The notes under the pieces: model-generated | Told to the model about the DNA's origin: nothing | Seen by the model: the letters and a program-made list of their open reading frames with translations, nothing else | Databases searched by the model: none | DNA from: Trichosphaerium sp. ATCC 40318 | Lineage: Eukaryota > Protista > Tubulinea | Direction of reading: 5' to 3' | NCBI GenBank assembly: GCA_038496445.1 | Contig: JALMLS010000075.1 | Coordinates: 355,435-419,434 of the forward strand | DNA: 64,000 nt | Position numbers and translations under genes: made by a program | In this document: one piece after another, positions 5,379-64,000 of the stretch | Position numbering within the stretch: position 1 is the first letter of the stretch | How the letters are laid out: the number at the start of each line of letters is the position of its first letter

Positions 5379-7403
5379 AACTTTTGAATAAGTTTGAGGT
5401 TGTAACCCAAAAAAAAAAGAAGACATCCCTTAATTACAATATCCTCCCAAGAAGATCCTAAGAAGTCTTCAGCTTGTTTTTAATCAATTACAAGCCGTTT
5501 TAAGGTTCTTAGGGCGTTAAACTTCCAAGTAAAACAAGAAAAAAAAAATTCATTAGAAGCATTATAGACCACTTGTAGGTACGAGTACATGAAGATCGAG
5601 GAGCTCAACTATTACGTGGCTGATGTTATAACTCTTCTGTCTAGGATTGTGTAGTCCTAACAACTGCTGAAGGTGTCGGTCTATTGAATCAGGTGCCAAT
5701 TAAATGATTCTGTGTAGAATTATTTATCGTAGTAGCTGGTGGCTTCTATGACCACTTACAAACGTCAAAAGCAGGTAATCATTAATTCTATTTTCTACAA
5801 CACCAATGACAAAATCTTCATTAATTTGATCATGTAACCTCACTATTCTTGCGTGAAAATAGAAAGCAACAATTGTAAAGTGCTTGTTATGGCATAAAAC
5901 CCTCTGACAGCAATTACAATCGTAACAACTTCGAAATTTGTTTAAAAGTGTTAATGCAATAATGTAGTGCTGCACGGCCGTATCAACACAACCACGTGCT
6001 TTAAAACTCGATTTTCTGAAAAAAAAAAGAAAAATTGTTTTATTGCTTTTGTTACTTCACTGTCGCCCTGACGTAAAAAATCACGTGCCTTGGCAAAGGT
6101 CCTTGTTTTCCTTTTTGACAAAAAAACTGCTTCGAATTTCTTTTTTTTTTTATTTTCGAATGTCTATCCTTTCATCTATTGTTAATTTCTAACCTAGCGT
6201 ATTCGAAAACTCGTTGCCTATTAAAGGAAACTCACTTGAACAGTGAAGTGTACATGTGGAGTGAATCTAAGAACACAAAAGCCAAAACAGAAGTGTCCTT
6301 GTATTTTGGTTGTATTCCTTCGTAGTTCACAGATGTTCCTAAATTAGCAATAAACGTAGTGCCTCAACCACCGTTGATGTAGATATCGGCGCTCATACGT
6401 ATTAGTGCGTAAATAGATAAAAATCTTTTTTACAACATTTGATTTTACTTATTTTAGGAAAAGGGTAGGCCGTAGGTATGTAAGCAATGACCTGTACCAA
6501 CGAAAATAATGAGGTGGCTCCATAGAAAAACTTAGATATAGGATAAAGCTTTTGAAGCTGGTTCACGTGACCTCCACGTGATTAAGATGGTCTAAACGTA
6601 CATTATACAGTAGATGTAATTTTTTGAAAACTAACAATTTGTACCCCTAAGAATGGACCAATGGTACATATCCTAACGTTGATAGTCGATTCTCTTGGCG
6701 TAATAAAAAAACTGCGAACCTTTACGCAATCTTTCTATATCCTCGTTTGCTTTAGTACAAATAGCTTCTTACGTAACGAAATCTGACACCGACAACTTTG
6801 AAGACAACGCAGATTGTGACTTATCATAGTTTTTACCAAAACGTATCCTCTCACTTCTTCGTGAGCACGAAGAATACACGAGAGCTATGGACACCAAATG
6901 TCTAACCGACATCAATAATTAACTTTCATTTCGGAAAACTAGTACGCGTACCTCGTATATCTTATCAATCAAACTTGAACGAGATTGAGTAAAATTTGTT
7001 GAGTGACTTTAAATGGATTTTGGATAGCAAAACCCAGTTTTGCCCAACTAAGCAAAAAACAATCAACTCAACAAGAGAAACACAACACCTCTAATACTTT
7101 ACAAACAATAAAATGTCATCAAGCGCTTCCCTACTTGCGACATACAGAGCGGAAAAATATTATTATCTAGGAGAGAGACATTGTAAGTAGCTTTCACCAA
7201 ATTTTTCGATCAAAAAAAACCACAGTAAAAAATCAATCAAACAAATCTTCAAAACGGAAACTAGCCCTCCACCATTTTACCTAGGATTTGCCTACAAAAA
7301 ACATTTCCACAAGCGTTTACGGGTGTTTCCGAGCTGCGGATTCTTTTTTTTTTGGAGAATTTTTCTAATGTAGACAGTATTTTGACGTTATACTAAGTAT
7401 ACT

Positions 7404-53638: not shown

Positions 53639-54643
53639 TTATATACAGTAAGAAATAGTGACAGGTTTTAATTCATCATATTCTTCTGCAACTATTGCTT
53701 TTCCTTTTATCCAGATTGCAGCGTATGATGATCTAAATTCAAGGTGCGGTATTTCAGAGCCAATAGACTTTAGAAATTGAAACTGATAATAAATTAGGTC
53801 ACACATGTTATGAATAGATACAGTAGACATACTTTTACTGGGTTTCTCATTTTTTTCCGGAATGGACTACCACGTACTGAGATAGCAACAATAGAACCTT
53901 CGGGTGCCTCATCAATAATAGCCGTCATTTCCTTTGTAATCTGAGCTAGTGCTTTATTTGGGACGGTAATGAGACTATGACTCTAAAACACTGTGACTGA
54001 GCAATAGAACAATAGTATCGTACAACAACAAATGTTTCAGAATCATAGACTACAACATTCCATCCGTATTTTCCAACTGATTTCTGTTTTCCTGAAGTAA
54101 ATGTAGCTTTATCACCACTCAGAGCTCCCGCTGAAGCCACAACAATTTCATTCTTGCAAACTAAACATGATGGTAGAACAGCTAATGCAAGTATGTTCAC
54201 GTGATGTAGGTACCTTTTGGTTTGTTTTGTTGAATTAGCTTTCTGGCTTTAACGCTTTTAGGTTTTTTGATAGCTTTAACTGTATCTTGATTCCGTGTAA
54301 ACATTGAACCACCTGTAGGCTGTAAAGTATTTTTAAGCCTTAAAGCCGATACTTTTTTATTGTCGGCTTCTTCGGTTGTATCTTCGCTAAGATTATTCTA
54401 CTAAGCGTTATCACGTGCTCGTACAGTACAACAGGAATAAGAAACTCAAATATTTATAATAAATAAATAGATACGCACTAAGAATGTCCAGTATCCATAC
54501 AATAGCACTGAAAGAAGAAGCAAGCAAACTATATTTGTTTTTGTACATATTTTTACCCCCTTCCTCTTCTTTCGCTTAGATACTACAAATACTTGCTGAT
54601 GAGGGGTAGAAAACTCCCATGAACGCTTTAGATTCCTCCTCAT
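53639..54643 (-). CDS. Type II membrane protein with ILEI/PANDER (FAM3/POMGNT1-stem-like) domain
   Basis: N-terminal TM IVCLLLLSVLLYGYW. VASAG...GKYGWNVVVYD, IDEAPEGSIVAIS, LKSIGS...LEFRSSYAAIWIKG. Confidence 0.7.
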
Positions 54644-54782
54644 TCTGGCCGGAGATTAGGAACAATCACGTGTAGGAGGTTGCTTTTTTTAGTCCATTCG
54701 TTTCAAACCTTGATATTTCTGGGTGAAAAACCTTCATTGAAACTCGAGTGTTGCATTCAAAACGACGTTGACGTACCGTACC

Positions 54783-55790
54783 ATGATGCGAAGCTCTATA
54801 TTACTCGTTGACTACCCAGGTCCTCAATACCACGCAAGCGTATTCTACCAAATACAAGTTTGCTCTTATAATACTATTATTTTAAACGGCCCTGGGTTCA
54901 AAGGAGCAGCGGGAGATGATAAATGGATAAAAGTTTACAACACTCCAAGTTTTGATGTCCAATCTCGCATACAGTTTGTAAATGATAACTGGACAAAGTT
55001 ATTCGGTTTTGAGTTTGTACACGTATGTTCAGCATCAAAAGAGTTCTTAGAAGGTGTAAAGCATCGAAGTATTTGTAATACACGTATTCTTGGCTTGGCA
55101 GATCCCATCAGACCAACATACGAAAGCTATCATGTTGATGTATTCGAAACAGTTACATTCAACAATAAACAATACAACCTTTGTCTACGTAAGATACCAA
55201 GACGCACTAACAGAAAGTATCCTTTCATGTGGACAAACAGTTCAAGAGTAGATCCTTGTCCTATATGTTTACCTCAAGAGAAAGTTATCTGTACTTCAAT
55301 TGCAAGTTTACTTGAGCACATGGAAGCAAGACATGGAGGTCCAAAGAAAAAGAAAGAAAAAAAAACTTGTGTTGTTTGTTGGGAACAACATAAGCCCCAT
55401 TTGTACATGTCCATGTGCAAGGTAAAAAATAGCCATGCTAGATTCAATTATTCAAGGGGAACTCACAATGGATGCGATGAATGTAGGGTAACGTGTTACA
55501 CAACAAAGGAGCTTATTCAACACTTGAGAGGAAAAAGACACAAGTTATTAGTGAGCAGAAAGAAACGTTATTTGCGTAAAATCAGGAATTCTGTTGTATT
55601 GACTGAACATTGGACTGTATTACGTATATTGTTTATTGGTTATTACGAAGAGAGTTCTAATTTTGGAGTGTTACCAAGGGAGATTTTCGACATTATTTTT
55701 GACCTTGTGATTGAGTCTAGTATATACCAAAGAGTAAAAGCTCAAAGTTGCGCTATACCTCTTTCAGGTGTCGTCACATACCTATACTAA
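54783..55790 (+). CDS. Intronless zinc-finger protein (C2H2 + matrin-type) with C-terminal F-box/SOCS-like helix
   Basis: CPIC...HMEARH, CDECRVTCYTTKELIQHLRGKRH, RILFIGYYEESSNFGVLPREIFDIIFDLV. Confidence 0.82.
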   Translation: MMRSSILLVDYPGPQYHASVFYQIQVCSYNTIILNGPGFKGAAGDDKWIKVYNTPSFDVQSRIQFVNDNWTKLFGFEFVHVCSASKEFLEGVKHRSICNTRILGLADPIRPTYESYHVDVFETVTFNNKQYNLCLRKIPRRTNRKYPFMWTNSSRVDPCPICLPQEKVICTSIASLLEHMEARHGGPKKKKEKKTCVVCWEQHKPHLYMSMCKVKNSHARFNYSRGTHNGCDECRVTCYTTKELIQHLRGKRHKLLVSRKKRYLRKIRNSVVLTEHWTVLRILFIGYYEESSNFGVLPREIFDIIFDLVIESSIYQRVKAQSCAIPLSGVVTYLY

Positions 55791-56336
55791 CAAAATAAAC
55801 AGCAAAATTAGTATAAATAAAACCTTGATCAAAATAAGTACATGAACAGGTTATTCTAGCCTAAACGTACTTTGTTTTTAAGCTAAGTATTTGAACTCCC
55901 ATTAGCTTTTAAACTTCCACGTGACTGCCGTCACTACATTCTCCCACTAACCTTAGGCAGCAGCCAGTATGCTATGACAATCTTGGCACATGATAAAGTC
56001 AGCCTTGAGCACTAAATCACGTCCAGGACGCGAATAGCGGACGTATACCACACCACGATAAAAACTAGAAACGAGGTATAATGTGTCGAATCGTTCATGC
56101 GTATTCATTAAATTCACGTGAATCACACATTGATTACCAACTCAAAAAACCCGTCTTCGCTCTTACATTGAACAGCAAGAAAACGCTCTATATACTATAT
56201 TTAATAAAGGATCTTAGGTTCGAGTCTTATAGAGTTGAGTTGGTAACAAGAATGAGTCCGTTTGGTGAATAACAGCAGAATTTTTTGGCATGAAAGTCTG
56301 TCCATCTAAAATCAAACTAAACCAACCATTTACACC

Positions 56337-57070
56337 ATGCACCTTCTCATCATTGCTACTTGCTTAATAGTATCAACAGTATTCGCTTCAACATTTGATG
56401 GATGTTCCTGTCTGCCTCAGAGTGAAGAAGAAATCTATTGTTCATCATCAGCAGTCCTTACCGTGGGTATTGTTCATGAGTATCCTTCAACAGCATCACA
56501 ACGTATTTTCTTGGCTTCTATACAAGAAGTACATAAATATCCTGCAGGAGCACCTCCATTCAACTTGATTACAATAACAACAGGGTAAACGTAAACTAAA
56601 TACAATGCTATTCTAACAGCCTCAAGGATTGACTCAGCATCTTGTGGCGTAGACTTTGAAGTAGGATCAACTAGCACTGGCTTCAAGGTACTCACTTGTT
56701 TGCTTATGTACGCCAGTTAGCTGACTTCGTTTAGAAATACCTCATCCCAGGAACCGTTATACCAACTACAACACTATTAGATAATGTTCACGTGTCAAGT
56801 TGTACTATGGAAGGCTTCTGTAACGTTCCAGATCCAAGCCAAATCGATTGTGCAAATCCAACACCTTTGCCTGACCCAAGTCAATGTGTTTTCTGCCCAA
56901 CGTCTACTCCACAATGTACAGGATGTTCGCATTGCGAAATTACACCTCAGCTATGCACAGAATGTCCTACGGCTCAATGTTGCGATAATATCAGATGTCA
57001 AGCTGCGCGTGAATGCACTGAAGGATGTGTTCAAGCTGGCTGCTGTGGAGGTTTTTGTGTACCACAATAG
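56337..57070 (+). CDS. Secreted TIMP/NTR-domain protein with Cys-rich tail (3 exons)
   Basis: Signal peptide, CSCLPQSEEEIYCSSSAV, ITTG/IDSASCGVDFEVG, KYLIPG, HVSSC. Confidence 0.8.
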
Positions 57071-57175
57071 TGTAGTAGTAAACACCCTCGTTTAGCATTT
57101 TTTGGTATTATGGTTGTTTAGAATTGTTACATTGAGATTAAACTGTTTTGTACTTTTTTTATTATTAGAAGTTTT

Positions 57176-59412
57176 TTAGTCATTATCTATTGCATCCATA
57201 GTAGTACTGTAAACACCAAGTATTCCAAGGAATATTGAAAATATCAAAAGTATAAGCACAGGAATCTTTTTCCCGTAAGGACGTAAAAAGTACTTTAGAT
57301 TTGCTCTGTTTAGTGGCCTGCAAAAAGTACGTTAATGTCAGTGTTTCAGACAGTTTAAACGTACAATCGTTCTTTCTGTGTGCTTTTTGAATTGACCAGT
57401 GACGTGCTTTCATCTTCCTGTGGAGTACTTGTCATTTTCTACATGATCAAAAGTTTAAGTAGCTGTTTTTGTTTTGGATGACTTAACAAAACACTTGAAA
57501 GCACAAAAGGTCAAGAACTACTTCTCTGAAATGCGTACCTCTGTAAAATCATCAGTTGCTTTTGCAGTCAAAAGCAAGTAAAAACAACACGGGAAAATAA
57601 GGACAATCAGAGCACCTCCCTAGTATTTTCAGTCAGTATTTTTTTTTTGGAACTCTGTTTTGAGATGTTTTACCGTTGCGCCTGTGTATGCGAATACAAT
57701 CTCGATACCAGGTAATAGAATAGCTAGAATATACGAAGAACTGATTACAAGCGCTGTAAATCCAAAAATTCGAATGTGTGTGATTGGTTGGTAGTTCCAG
57801 AAAATAAGCCTATCAAGTGCGTTCCTAGTGAAAAAATTAAAAACGACATTGCGTTTTTTTGCGATCATGTACCTCAATGGATAACACAATATTGGATAAG
57901 AGAACATAATAATAAGCGAGTATCCAATCTTTATAATATCAAATAATAAATCTCCCTCAAAGTCGTTCAAGATGTTACCTAGCTCAAGTTAAAAAAAACA
58001 CCAGAAGAATACGACACTAAAATTCGAACTCACCAGTAATTTCGCTTCCGAAGTTCAAGTAACCAAATATAGCCACTGTAAAGTACGTTGTAAAACAAAT
58101 ACCAACTGCTGAGAAAACCTAAATTATCACGTGATAAGCGTGTCAACGCACTAAAGAGAAAAGTTTTTTTTTCAAAACAGTTAAATATGCGTACTGCAAC
58201 TTGTATTGTTTTCGTCCCTGAGTCACGCATCTCGTTCCAAATTGGAAAGATATTTGGATGAAACGTGAATGCGAATATTATAATAGGTGGCGTTTGGAAC
58301 GTTTGGATGTCAAACTTGGCCAAAATGATGTCCTGTGTGTCTAAACCACTTGCTATTTTTTGTGATCCACGGATTACTACGCCAACTAAGAAGAACACTA
58401 TACATCCCACAGCAACCTAACATAAGCATAAGTAAAGTGTACAGCCTCTTGTATTCGTACAATTGAAGTAAACCGGAGCGAGTGTATATGTTTCAAATTA
58501 CAAAGAGGGAATAACACAAAAATGCAAACCATCGCTTGTACAAGTCTAAAACAAGTCAGCAAACTTCATTCCAACAAATGTGCTGAAACCGTACTCTTTT
58601 GGTAGATAAAGTCCAGGCCATGCCAGTAATGGTGTAACCAAATCACCTAAGGAACGTCATCAAAAACAAAGCACGTGCTTTGCTTTTAACTAGCATAAAA
58701 ATACTGAGCGTACCCAAAATACCAATGTAACCTATCATTGTTCCAAAAAGAAAGAGTACCAAAGTTAGGTCAACCTGTTATAATAGCGATTAATGGAAGA
58801 CAAGTATTACTGGCGTATGCATACAATTATAGGTCCTGCGACACCAAAAGCAGTGCGGCTCAAAGCTTTGTAAGATTTTCCTGAGTAATACGTAAGATAT
58901 ACCGTTTTATTACCAAAAGGCCGCTTCAAAATGATTTCTAAAAGAGCCAAAGAAAGGAATGACATTTTGAGTCTTCACGGTACTTTTCTCAATTTACAGA
59001 AACTTCTGTACGCTATAAAACAATCGTACCTCCGCTCACAGGTGGTACAGAGAGTGAAGTTAATAGACTTGAGCTATAACTGACCAAAGCAGCGCCAATC
59101 ACTAGTAAAGCAACGCCAAGTACAACCCCTGATGAAAAACGTTTGGTTAGCACGTGATTTTACAAAAAAAAAAGACAGCTAACCTGTAACCCCAAATGTA
59201 AATGGAAGTGCTAAAATACCGCCACCAATGATCGTATTGGTGAGATTAAATATGGCAGATATGATACCAGCGCCAGGTGACTCTAGAATCTCTGGATCCT
59301 CCTCAGCCGCATTGTTTGTACTATCACTGCTTGTTCTGGATCTGGACATGCTTGGAGAGTCCTGATCAGTTGAAGTGGTAACTTGAATAGCCGTTGGTGG
59401 CGCAGAAGCCAT
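57176..59412 (-). CDS. Amino acid transporter, Aa_trans/SLC38-like
   Basis: SAIFNLTNTIIGGGILALPFTF, IFAFTFHPNIFPIWNEM, SYPILCYPLR; multiple TM exons. Confidence 0.92.
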
Positions 59413-59510
59413 GATTTTTTTAATTCGTCACAATTGCAACTTAACCGGACATATTATTAAGCGAACCTTGCTGTAACCAACTCCTATCTCAAAACAACAT
59501 CGCTAAAACT

Positions 59511-59789
59511 ATGAGCTTCCCTGGCGTCTCAGTTAAGCAAGCAATCACATACTACCTCAAAGCCCACACAAAGAAATTCGTTGGAATTAACAAAAAACAA
59601 AATGAAACATTCGTAAAACAACTTGAAAGTTTCTTAAACGTGACGAACACATGTTTACTAGAACAACTTGACAATCTTCTTTTTGAATACACCGAATCCA
59701 TAGAAAATAAAACAAGCCAGAATGTGATGCAACCCTTGGAGCTTAAGGAGCAGAAAATCAAACAAACAAGAGTGCGTTTGAATAAATGA
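59511..59789 (+). CDS. Hypothetical 92-aa protein
   Basis: ATG-started intronless ORF, divergent from the transporter; no domain recognised. Confidence 0.4.
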   Translation: MSFPGVSVKQAITYYLKAHTKKFVGINKKQNETFVKQLESFLNVTNTCLLEQLDNLLFEYTESIENKTSQNVMQPLELKEQKIKQTRVRLNK

Positions 59790-59803
59790 AGTTAGTGACT
59801 AAG

Positions 59804-60317
59804 CTCGTCTGACGGTTAAGTCGTTACAGTTAGCTTTTCCTTATAATTCTGACACACTTCACAAACTGTCTTCCTTAAGCTTGTATAATCAGGTAGCTAT
59901 GGCTATACTGATCAAATGGACATGGAAGATTTACAATAACGCTACACATTCGAAAGGTCTGTTGCCAATTTCGGTTCATAGAAAAGTAATTAAAGATGAG
60001 CTCGATGACACATGGAAACAGATTCAACACATATTCAACAAAACTTACATTTATCGCTACAACCTTACAATTACCATTTGACTTGTCCGGTCAACTGGGA
60101 GTTGGTTTTCTCCTCTAACATTCAGGTGGAAAGGATGGGAAGGGTTCAAATCCCTTTTAACATTTTGGGCGGAAGTTCGTAGCTTCACGTTTTTGGTGCT
60201 CTGTTGGCGATCGAAGGAACTATGTATCTTGTATGCAAATAATTGCTTGTAATCGTTGGCTCGGTGAGCCGTCCTTGTATAGTAAACCTAGACTTAAAAA
60301 AAAAAAAAAAAAAAAAA
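59804..60317 (+). mobile_element. 5'-truncated non-LTR retrotransposon (L1/Tx1/TRE-like 3' end) with poly(A) and target-site duplication
   Basis: AAGTTAGTGACTAAG at 59789-59803 and 60316-60330. A22 at 60296-60317. Reading frame open from 59806 to 60081 with ILIKWTWKIYN, resembling the WxIWxxRN motif of the ORF2 C-terminus. Confidence 0.88.
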
Positions 60318-60355
60318 GTTAGTGACTAAGATTCCCCTAAACGAAGCAGACAACT

Positions 60356-61626
60356 ATGCACAGTGTTACAAATGTGCTTGAATTTCCACCAGAGGTTATT
60401 GCGAATATTCTACATCATACAGAAGCAAAAACAAGATTCGCAATTGCTCAATCATGTAGTTTGATGGCTGATGTCATGCACGATGTTGTTGGATATGAGG
60501 ATGTTTATATCAAGCGTGTTCCTGACATTCTTAAGATAAGACAGTACAAGGGGATAATGAATAACAGTAGAGTCGTACTTAAAACAAAGGAAAACCATAC
60601 TTTGTTTTCATTGTTATCTGGGTGTCGCGTAATTGATGCATCTGTAAGTACTATTCGCATTACAGATGACGATCTAGAAGAGCTTGCAGGTGTCCATTGT
60701 ATTGATCTTCATGCTTGTAGCAATGTTACCGACAGAGGTATAGTTGCATTAAAAGGTGTTCATGCCATAAACCTAGAAGACACTCATGTGACAGATGCAG
60801 GTATTAAACAACTCGCTGGTGTTCATACTATTCACCTTCGCGAAACAATTATAGATGACGGTGTAATAGCACTTGCAGGTGTTCATAATATAGACCTTAC
60901 GCTCACTTCAGTGTCAGATGAAGGTGTCAAAGCTCTTGCAGGCGTACATACCATTCACCTTGATGGTACTTCAGTGACTGATGAGGGTATCAAAGCGCTA
61001 GCAGGCGTTCATAGTATTGATCTTGCAGATACATTGGCAACAGATGAAGCTCTCATAGCATTAAAAGGTGTACATGCGATCAATCTCTTTGGCACTAAAG
61101 TAACAGATACAGGCATAAAGGCGTTGGCAGGTGTTCATACAATTAGCCTCGATGGTGTTTCAGTGACTGATGAAGGTATTATAGCACTTGCTGGGGTTCA
61201 TACCATTCACCTTGAGGATGCAATGGAGGTTACTGATGAAGGCATCAAATCTCTTGCAGGAGTACATATGATCGCCCTTGGTGGCACTAAAGTGACAGAT
61301 GAAGGTGTCAAAGCGCTTGCAGGCGTTCATACCATCGGTCTTACCAATACATTAGTTTAAAGGGAATCCATATGATTGATGTTCATGGCACTGAAGTTAC
61401 AGATGAAGGCATAATAGCTATTTATGGCGTTCAATCTGCTCATAATATTGGTATTGAGTGTTGCTCAGTACCAAATAGCAGCATAGAGGGACCACAATAT
61501 GTTAAAGTGGCAAGATTCGAACAATATGAGATGCCAATTGATTATTGGTTTGATACTTTTTGGAGGCGTATAAAACCAACAAAACAGTATATTTTAAGGC
61601 CTTTAAATCCAGTCAGTAACTTGTAA
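60356..61626 (+). pseudogene. Intronless F-box + LRR gene (LAGVHTIxL repeats), disrupted by a frameshifting deletion near 61357
   Basis: F-box LEFPPEVIANILHH and ~22-aa repeats. After TLV the expected TDEGVKA is missing, and the repeat resumes in another frame as LKGIHMIDVHGTEVTDEG. Confidence 0.8.
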
Positions 61627-62265
61627 CACACTGCAGCATAGGCATTACCGCCTTCCATATTCATACGACTAATAGACGTTAGATTAATACTTTGGCTCTA
61701 ACTAGCCAGGCGTTGTAAAATCCAATTTAATAGTTGTTAGGTAACTTTTGCATAACTATCCTGGCCGCGAAGTTTGATTGTAAGCACCACGTGATAGTGG
61801 GGCAGCACATTTTTTACAATTTGTACAATTTGCCGATTGCCTAAAATTAGAGAATTTGCGTGAAAATACATAAAATTACCTTGTATATAAAAAATAAATT
61901 GGCAGAACTGGCAATACCTTTTCTCACCACTGTATTAACGAAATAAGTTATTACTTCACAGTACTCTATAGTATACCTCATTTTATTGTTACGCTAGCAT
62001 ACGCTAAAGTGTACATACCAAACGGCTGCAATGCCAAAAGTAGTTAATAACTTACGTGAAACGTTCAAGCTCAGATAAAATTGTCCTCAGGTTAAGCTAC
62101 TTGATTCAACTTGTACCCTAAACGTCAACCACGACATAATAACGCTACTTACAAGGGCATACTTCAGTTACGTAATTTCCCGCCACTGACGTACAGTTAA
62201 GCCACTTATTTTTTTCTCTTCACAACCGCCACTAACGTATACCTAACGCATCTAACACAAACAAT

Positions 62266-64000
62266 ATGGCTACAATAACCGGTGTACGTTAATTGATTAA
62301 ACACTCATTTCAACAAGATTGCTCAATAACGCTCCTACAGAATCAAAACGTAGTCATTCAAGCGTTTTCTAGTCCTGGACCTTCTGGTAGCTCTGGACCA
62401 CTTACAGATATAACAAATACTCCAAGAACGCCCCTTGGGACTTCAAAGGGTGTTAAAGTGGACCTCGCTCTCGTACGCACTTTTCTACAGTAGCGGTTAA
62501 TCAGATACATTTAATCTACTGTTTCTGGGACTACTTGAGCGTTTTAAGCTTTAGTACGCGTAACCGACACTTGGCTGACGGTTTTATAGGATGACGATGT
62601 TGGAAGCTTCTTCGCTGAGAACTGGACGCCACAATACGGCGATGACGTGCGTACCAAGAGCATTTAACACATTCCTAAATCCGGACAAAATCTAATAATC
62701 GTACCAGAGTCTATCAGAGGAAATTGCGTCTACTGACAAGAAACTATACACGCAGGAGCAACTGGACGAACAAGTACAAAAGGTAAGAAAAATCGAAATA
62801 AGCACAAAATCATCAAAGCTGCTTTGTAGAGCATCTATTTACGTTAAAAACAGGCTATCAGTGATGCCAAGGCTCAATATAAATATACTCAAGAAGACCT
62901 TGATAAAGCAGTTACCGCAGCGCGAGATGCAGCACTTGAACAGGTAAGAGAGAGGGTTACATTTTTTGTTTCTTTTTTATTTCTTCGACTTTTGGGCTTT
63001 TTCTTTATTTCTCGCGTATTGTTGCTCATTATTTATGTTTGCTAGGCTGCACTTATTGCTAATGAAGCGGAAAAAATGGAAAAAGCGTACCAACAAGCGA
63101 ATGAAGAGAAAGCGCAGTTGACATCGATGTTGTCCGAGTATGAGGCCGTTTTATCGAATGTAATGGGTACGTCTTTCTTTATTTTGTGCTACACCACCAT
63201 GCGATACAGCTGTAATATTTAGTTGCCCTGAAGCTACTTTTGCGCCAACGCTAAACGTTTTCTTTCTTGGAATATTCTTTTTTTTTCTCTATTTTTTCGT
63301 GTTCATTGTTTGAATTGTGAGCGTTTTTGATGAGTATTATTTGCTAGTATCCATGATATAAATATATTCTCGCTTAATCTCACTCAATTGAAGCCACAGA
63401 GTTTTATTTTATCTTTTTCCGATCAAACGACTGATTCGGTGTATTAATTTGTTTGTTTAGCAAACAATGACTCAAAGGCTTCTTCCGTAAATGCCGTATA
63501 CGCTCAGAAAGTAACAAATCTTCAGCTCGAGAATGCTAAACTGAAGCAAGAACATGAAGAAATTGAGAATAGCTTCAAACAACTACACCAACGTTATGAA
63601 CAAATGAAGCAAATTAACCATAATTTTACAAAGGTATAAATTTCTTTGTTCATTGTCACCTTGTTTCTGAAGTACCTCTCTAACACATACCTCTCTAGAA
63701 CGAAACAGTGCTTAAACAAACATTATCAAAGACACAGAATGACCTTATGTCATCTGAAGCTCAATTCCAAACGTTGAAGCAGCATGCCGAAGAAAAACTT
63801 CGTGATGCTTCCCGCCAAATTTCAGAAGCTCATTGGCAAAAAGAACATGTTAGAGCATTACTTACTGGTCGATTAAATCACTTGAAAGCAAGAGTCCGTG
63901 TCTCAGAGAATGAATTAAAAGGACAGAAGGAACATAACAAGATGTTGGAAAAGATGTTTTCGAATGTATTTAAAGGAGGAGAAGGCAAAAGTGAAGAGAA
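62266..64000 (+). CDS. TACC (transforming acidic coiled-coil) protein, runs off the window end
   Basis: KYTQEDLDKAV, MLSEYE, IENSFKQLHQRYEQMKQINHNFTK/NETVLKQ...FQTLKQHAEEKL match the TACC domain. Confidence 0.85.

Follow-up and report, generated by a model that had tools for sequence, protein, structure and literature searches.

Tx1 and the TRE elements of Dictyostelium are APE-type LINEs that carry poly(A) or A-rich tails, and TRE is the known amoebozoan example. Here we compare with these systems, and with human LINE-1 (L1), an insertion found in a 64-kb stretch of protist DNA (C32:355435-419434, hereafter the window). The 492 nt of element sequence in this insertion were used to search the whole 70-Mb, 642-contig assembly. 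Judged from sequence, the segment at 59804-60317 is very probably a very young, 5′-truncated copy of a low-copy and apparently still competent APE-type LINE, located inside an intron.

An earlier note on this stretch had proposed a recent 5′-truncated insertion of a non-LTR family, with identical 15-bp repeats flanking ~510 bp that end in 22 A's, and all of these elements are present. Within the window there are exactly two occurrences of AAGTTAGTGACTAAG, which form a direct repeat without differences at 59789..59803 (5′ copy) and 60316..60330 (3′ copy), both on the plus strand. An exact direct repeat of at least 15 nt at a spacing of 300-1000 nt appeared in 1 of 300 shuffles. Between the two copies lie the 492 nt of element sequence (59804-60295) and a poly(A) tail of 22 A's (60296..60317, plus strand), the last two of which are common to the 3′ copy of the duplication. 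The insert therefore measures 514 bp (59804-60317), or ~527 extra bp when the duplication is included. The reading frame described as open from its left edge spans 59803-60078 (ARLTVKSLQ...TITI) and closes at a TGA at 60079-60081; the 3′UTR behind it, first estimated at ~215 nt, is 214 nt long (60082..60295, plus strand).

The genome search revealed where this sequence comes from. The 492 nt match L025:8994-9485 with zero differences, and this interval forms the 3′ terminus of a complete 4,474-bp element with intact ORFs on contig C95 (L025:5040-9513). The element comprises a 5′ leader of 78 nt, an ORF1 of 293 aa, an ORF2 of 1,091 aa that overlaps ORF1 by ATGA, a 3′UTR of 214 nt identical to that in the window, and a run of 28 A's, and it is flanked on both sides by a 14-bp target duplication, ATTGAAGAGATTGG. 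Its ORF2 matches the Pfam families RVT_1 (2.4e-31, residues 503-734) and Exo_endo_phos (8.5e-6, 26.1 bits against a cut-off of 24.5, residues 32-204). The best solved relative is human L1 ORF2p (5.9e-34, residues 6-689), to which it is collinear from the endonuclease to the reverse transcriptase (RT), whereas R2 proteins are matched more weakly and over the RT only (3e-21). The last 92 codons and the TGA of ORF2, present in the window at 59804..60081 (plus strand), are identical to residues 1000-1091 of the C95 protein. The window copy is thus the exact 3′ end of an intact endonuclease- and RT-encoding element, and it is 100% identical to that source; the 5′ truncation and the recent non-LTR origin claimed for it hold.

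The C95 copy interrupts LRR coding sequence. A near-identical counterpart of its contig, C617, carries a clean empty site (L066:1735-1760; C617 about 6540-6565), in which one ATTGAAGAGATTGG runs directly into the 3′ flank; the assembly thus contains both a filled and an empty version of this site, and the source-like copy is an insertion polymorphism in its turn. Upstream of the LRR gene that hosts it, the minus strand of C95 contains MORN-repeat-like ORFs with GWYxNGQL repeats (L025:2976-3868).

The nature of this source decides whether the insert could instead be a processed retrocopy, that is, the 3′ end of a cellular mRNA mobilized in trans. Processed pseudogenes, too, bear a poly(A) tail and a target duplication, and the insert's own peptide has no recognizable Pfam domain. 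A processed pseudogene would, however, go back to a spliced cellular source without RT, and what we found is a source that encodes both endonuclease and RT and is itself an insertion, with its own duplication and empty site. In addition, the window's 92 codons are the C-terminus of ORF2, and this C-terminus is kept in sister LINE lineages at 35-47% identity. We therefore regard a retrocopy as extremely improbable and treat the insert as a LINE copy.

Far from being single-copy, the sequence has multiple 3′-coterminal relatives in the assembly, and both the coterminal copies and the full-length endonuclease/RT master anticipated by the earlier note were recovered. The C95 element is the only full-length copy, and the family is therefore small. 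A 2.5-kb copy on C197 is 99% identical, has one frameshift and is flanked by the duplication AAATCAATTT, while a 1.5-kb copy on C74 is 93% identical and is flanked by AGGATAAATACATC. The latter is interrupted by an unrelated nested insertion of 1.95 kb (L026:2630-4580; C74:68629-70579), in which we found no convincing ORF and no convincing terminal repeats. A further copy of 0.49 kb, 95% identical, belongs to one locus represented on three contigs (C544, C516 and C77); it has a degenerate tail, and its duplication is not clear. Several fragments of 50-100 nt contain the extreme 3′ end of the LINE only. Copies of 4.47, 2.5, 1.5, 0.51 and 0.49 kb, together with the tail fragments, share a common 3′ end and vary in their 5′ truncation. 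At four loci the target duplications measure 15, 14, 13-14 and about 10 bp, differ in sequence and each start with A. A common 3′ end, variable 5′ ends and differing A-initial duplications are the standard signature of target-primed reverse transcription.

The 5′ junction of the window copy adds detail to this picture. Full-length copies read TGATTTAG just before the window truncation point, and the duplication ends in TGACTAAG. The last two nucleotides (AG) of the 5′ duplication copy can consequently be assigned to either target or element, and six of its last eight nucleotides agree with the element sequence just ahead of the truncation point. Short microhomology of this kind at the 5′ junction is well described for truncated L1 copies (PMC2912911). 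In the mechanism we propose, the LINE endonuclease would have introduced a bottom-strand nick at the left edge of AAGTTAGTGACTAAG, giving a T-ended 3′-OH that would have primed on the poly(A) tail of the LINE RNA. Reverse transcription would have reached only the last 492 nt, after which the cDNA end would have been joined to the target through the short microhomology (AG exact, 6/8 nt extended), probably by an end-joining route. A staggered second nick would then account for the 15-bp duplication. The target was intron 1 of an F-box/LRR gene, 51 nt long before the event, in which the element lies in sense orientation.

That the target is an intron is a departure from the earlier note, which had placed the insertion 25 bp upstream of an F-box/LRR gene and had taken the ATG at 60356 as the gene's start codon, cut off from its upstream DNA. 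The window allele lends itself to such a reading, in which the LINE would occupy the promoter, or the 5′ region, of an independent gene: ATG 60356 opens the F-box frame, and the small upstream ORF of 92 codons (59511-59789), which would then be a separate gene, stops at a TGA at 59787-59789. The paralogues argue against it. A genome search with both flanks always recovered the small ORF and the F-box/LRR frame as one duplicated unit, and this unit begins at the ATG of the small ORF. With the insert and one copy of the duplication removed, the window aligned to five paralogous loci without gaps across the junction, at 68-73% identity. None of the five paralogues has an ATG at the position of 60356, nor any other start codon there ahead of the F-box. 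No stop is conserved in the upstream frame, whose offset from the downstream frame varies among the paralogues (0, 1 or 2). All six sequences (the window and the five paralogues) carry GT[AG][CT]GT directly after codon 87, at phase 0, and an AG lies 44-53 nt further on, at which the two frames connect with no stop between them. This pattern of start codons, stops, offsets and splice sites therefore identifies the 92-codon ORF as exon 1 and 59772-60349 as the intron, and makes two separate genes a highly unlikely arrangement.

The gene so reconstructed lies on the plus strand and begins with an exon 1 of 87 codons (59511..59771), delimited by the paralogue alignment. Intron 1 extends from GTGCGT to CAG (59772..60349); it measures 578 nt as found and 51 nt once the insert is discounted. 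Exon 2 (60350..61360) encodes an F-box-like N-terminus and LRR_6 repeats, and ends early at a TAA at 61358-61360. When the exons were scanned separately, exon 2 matched LRR_6 (2.4e-13) and, below threshold, the F-box (0.026); no significant match was obtained for exon 1. An 87-codon exon 1 followed by a 44-53-nt phase-0 intron is seen across this F-box/LRR family (window 59511-60349; L036-L039, L051).

The LINE copy lies in sense orientation within intron 1, which it lengthens eleven-fold, from 51 to 578 nt. A branch-point-like motif reads ACTAAT in four of the five paralogues, ATTAAT in the fifth (L039) and ACTAAG in the window, where it falls inside the duplicated 15-mer. The 3′ copy of the duplication keeps one ACTAAG 20 nt ahead of the 3′ CAG. 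Since the duplication copied this motif, the 5′ splice site, a normally spaced branch point and the 3′ splice site have all survived the insertion. The LINE 3′ end and A22 now carried by the longer intron may still affect its removal or cause premature transcript ends.

The allele was also compared with a sister contig, C203, which is collinear with the window over 53714-64000 at 99.1-99.4% identity. C203 has an intact exon-2 frame of 429 aa. Relative to it, 22 bp are missing from the window allele after 61356, which breaks the 63-bp periodicity of the repeats; the F-box/LRR frame read from 60356 ends at the TAA at 61358-61360, and the repeat goes on out of frame. The frameshift suspected in this gene is thus real and is confined to the window allele of the pair, which carries two lesions, the LINE insertion and the 22-bp deletion.

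The search for empty sites suggested by the earlier note succeeded in part. The five paralogous loci provide empty sites for the window insertion, as C617 does for the C95 copy, but C203 does not offer a clean one. It holds 169 nt between the same flanks (L035:2103-2271; C203:6096-6264). MAFFT pairwise alignment of this stretch was uninformative, and it was therefore compared with the window by deletion-only alignment. Measured from duplication to duplication, the 195 nt of C203 are a perfect subsequence of the 542 nt in the window; the 40 matching blocks are separated by 39 gaps and contain no mismatch. The longest common subsequence of the remnant is 167/168, against 159.5 +/- 1.8 in shuffles (maximum 164). 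We also considered whether the stretch might be a separate repeat family; this was rejected, as it has no other copy in the genome.

A consensus caller fed mixed reads with and without an insertion yields a deletion-only remnant. The C203 stretch is probably such a consensus artefact, because 39 deletions without a substitution are implausible for an insert otherwise identical to its source, and it would point indirectly to a hemizygous insertion in the window. Its presence in the assembly between flanks of 99.1-99.4% identity, and the fact that at the 4.5-kb C95/C617 pair the assembler did resolve a clean empty site, could also be indicative of a real allele, either the same insertion heavily deleted or an independent one by a short related element. 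Against this stand the perfect subsequence relationship, a common subsequence above the shuffle maximum and the absence of another genome copy; the element-derived blocks also show no mismatch to C95, which is not a natural decay pattern. A real allele is accordingly unlikely, though less so than the alternatives rejected above, and we retain the artefact as the preferred reading. The decimated remnant is in itself a warning about assembly consensus at hemizygous insertions.

Two features of the wider family deserve mention. The truncation points of the window copy (59804; 100% identical to the source) and of the C544 copy (L004:458, also L005 and L006; 95%) lie at most 2 nt apart. Such agreement between two independent truncation points reflects either chance or a hotspot of reverse-transcription termination, and a mini-copy of ~0.5 kb could be favored by a reverse-transcription stop or by an RNA-processing hotspot. 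The second feature is that three of the five mapped LINE insertion loci lie in or against F-box/LRR genes, a type of LRR that makes up ~3% of the window. The F-box/LRR-linked loci, together with a related junction, are found at window 59772-60349, L025:5026-5039 and 9514 onwards, L004:943-1731 and L020:1501-2567. The last of these resembles a diverged duplicate of the C544 junction between LINE tail and LRR, a likeness from which it follows that LINE fragments are copied along with LRR genes. The LINE may prefer, or persist in, the F-box/LRR family and may, separately, have a 5′ truncation hotspot, a reading that we consider unlikely. If the insertion or retention preference were true, the LINE would be a recurrent agent of turnover and pseudogenization in the F-box/LRR family.

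The 3′UTR of the element was examined for structure. A motif at 60145-60155, GGTTCAAATCC, resembles a tRNA T-arm. ARAGORN found no tRNA in the window, however, and the 3′UTR has no Rfam match at E <= 1. Folding z-scores are ordinary (+0.45 for the whole 3′UTR and -0.8 for 60085-60166), and four related sequences yielded nothing useful on covariation. A tRNA-like or structured 3′UTR is thus unsupported by ARAGORN, Rfam, folding energy and covariation. At the sequence level, the block GGAAAGGATGGGAAGGGTTCAAATCC is kept in the related loci L009, L011 and L013.

These results show that a LINE family has moved very recently in a protist genome that is gene-dense and little studied, as evidenced by an intact hemizygous source copy and a daughter copy without differences from it. 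This is useful for genome annotation and for judging genome stability. The F-box/LRR gene model is corrected to include a short first exon and a ~50-nt intron, and ORF-based annotation would split such genes into two. The locus also offers a natural experiment on a small scale: a tiny intron has become eleven-fold longer and kept all of its splice signals.

With respect to classification, the C95 element combines a non-LTR RT with an N-terminal EEP endonuclease, lacks LTRs, ends in a 3′ poly(A), and exists as copies with a common 3′ end and variable 5′ truncation. Target duplications vary across the family, and the empty sites, at C617 for the C95 copy and at the paralogous loci for the window copy, contain a single copy of the target. 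All of these are hallmarks of an APE-type LINE. Its working is L1-like, while membership in the L1, Tx1 or TRE clade is not established. The earlier note had read a WxIWxxRN-like motif near the end of the peptide as a sign of L1/Tx1/TRE affinity, a claim that could not be sustained. The C-terminal motif in question, IKWTWKIYNNATH, is kept in sister lineages as L.K..W..YN.A.H..G (W-x2-Y-N-x-A-x-H) and is therefore under constraint, but it could not be aligned reliably with the IW..RN of an L1-type plant protein. The C-terminal CCHC knuckle of ORF2 (C-x-C...H...C) is absent from the C95 family and from seven sister sequences; the block at its position reads W-S...A-S-Y-H-x-T-x-C-x-x-A-W and has only H...C...W. 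ORF1 gave no Pfam match at E <= 1 in a sequence-level search, Transposase_22 included, and no PDB match at E <= 10. Beyond this genome, the nearest proteins reach 22-32% identity and are weak matches of mixed type.

Inside the genome, the nearest relatives are sister LINE lineages on C486/C280, C433, C41, C16, C3 and C109. They have the same ORF2 architecture, with intact frames of 1,095-1,111 aa that are 40-47% identical to the C95-family ORF2, and they share the C-terminal motifs PLLRDY..R.ILR.L.C, WILF.SPP and L.K..W..YN.A.H..G. At the DNA level they have no match to the C95-family 3′UTR and represent separate families; none of them gave rise to the window copy, whose identity to C95 is 100%.

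Compared with described systems, the family most resembles human LINE-1 in having two ORFs and an APE-like endonuclease, linker and RT collinear with L1 ORF2p. The resemblance extends to the poly(A), the variable 5′ truncation, the A-initial duplications of 10-15 bp and the microhomology at the 5′ junction. It differs from LINE-1 in that its ORF2 has only 1,091 aa and no C-x-C...H...C knuckle, its ORF1 lacks Transposase_22 and any other Pfam or PDB match, and its ORFs overlap by ATGA. TRE and Tx1, site-specific lineages of the L1 group that insert at tRNA genes or other repeats, were compared by their targeting. The window contains no tRNA gene and the four mapped targets are unrelated, so there is no sign of tRNA-gene or other site-specific targeting in the protist family. 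These findings leave known LINE biology unchanged: the LINE shared by C95 and the window adds a new family to a familiar kind of element.
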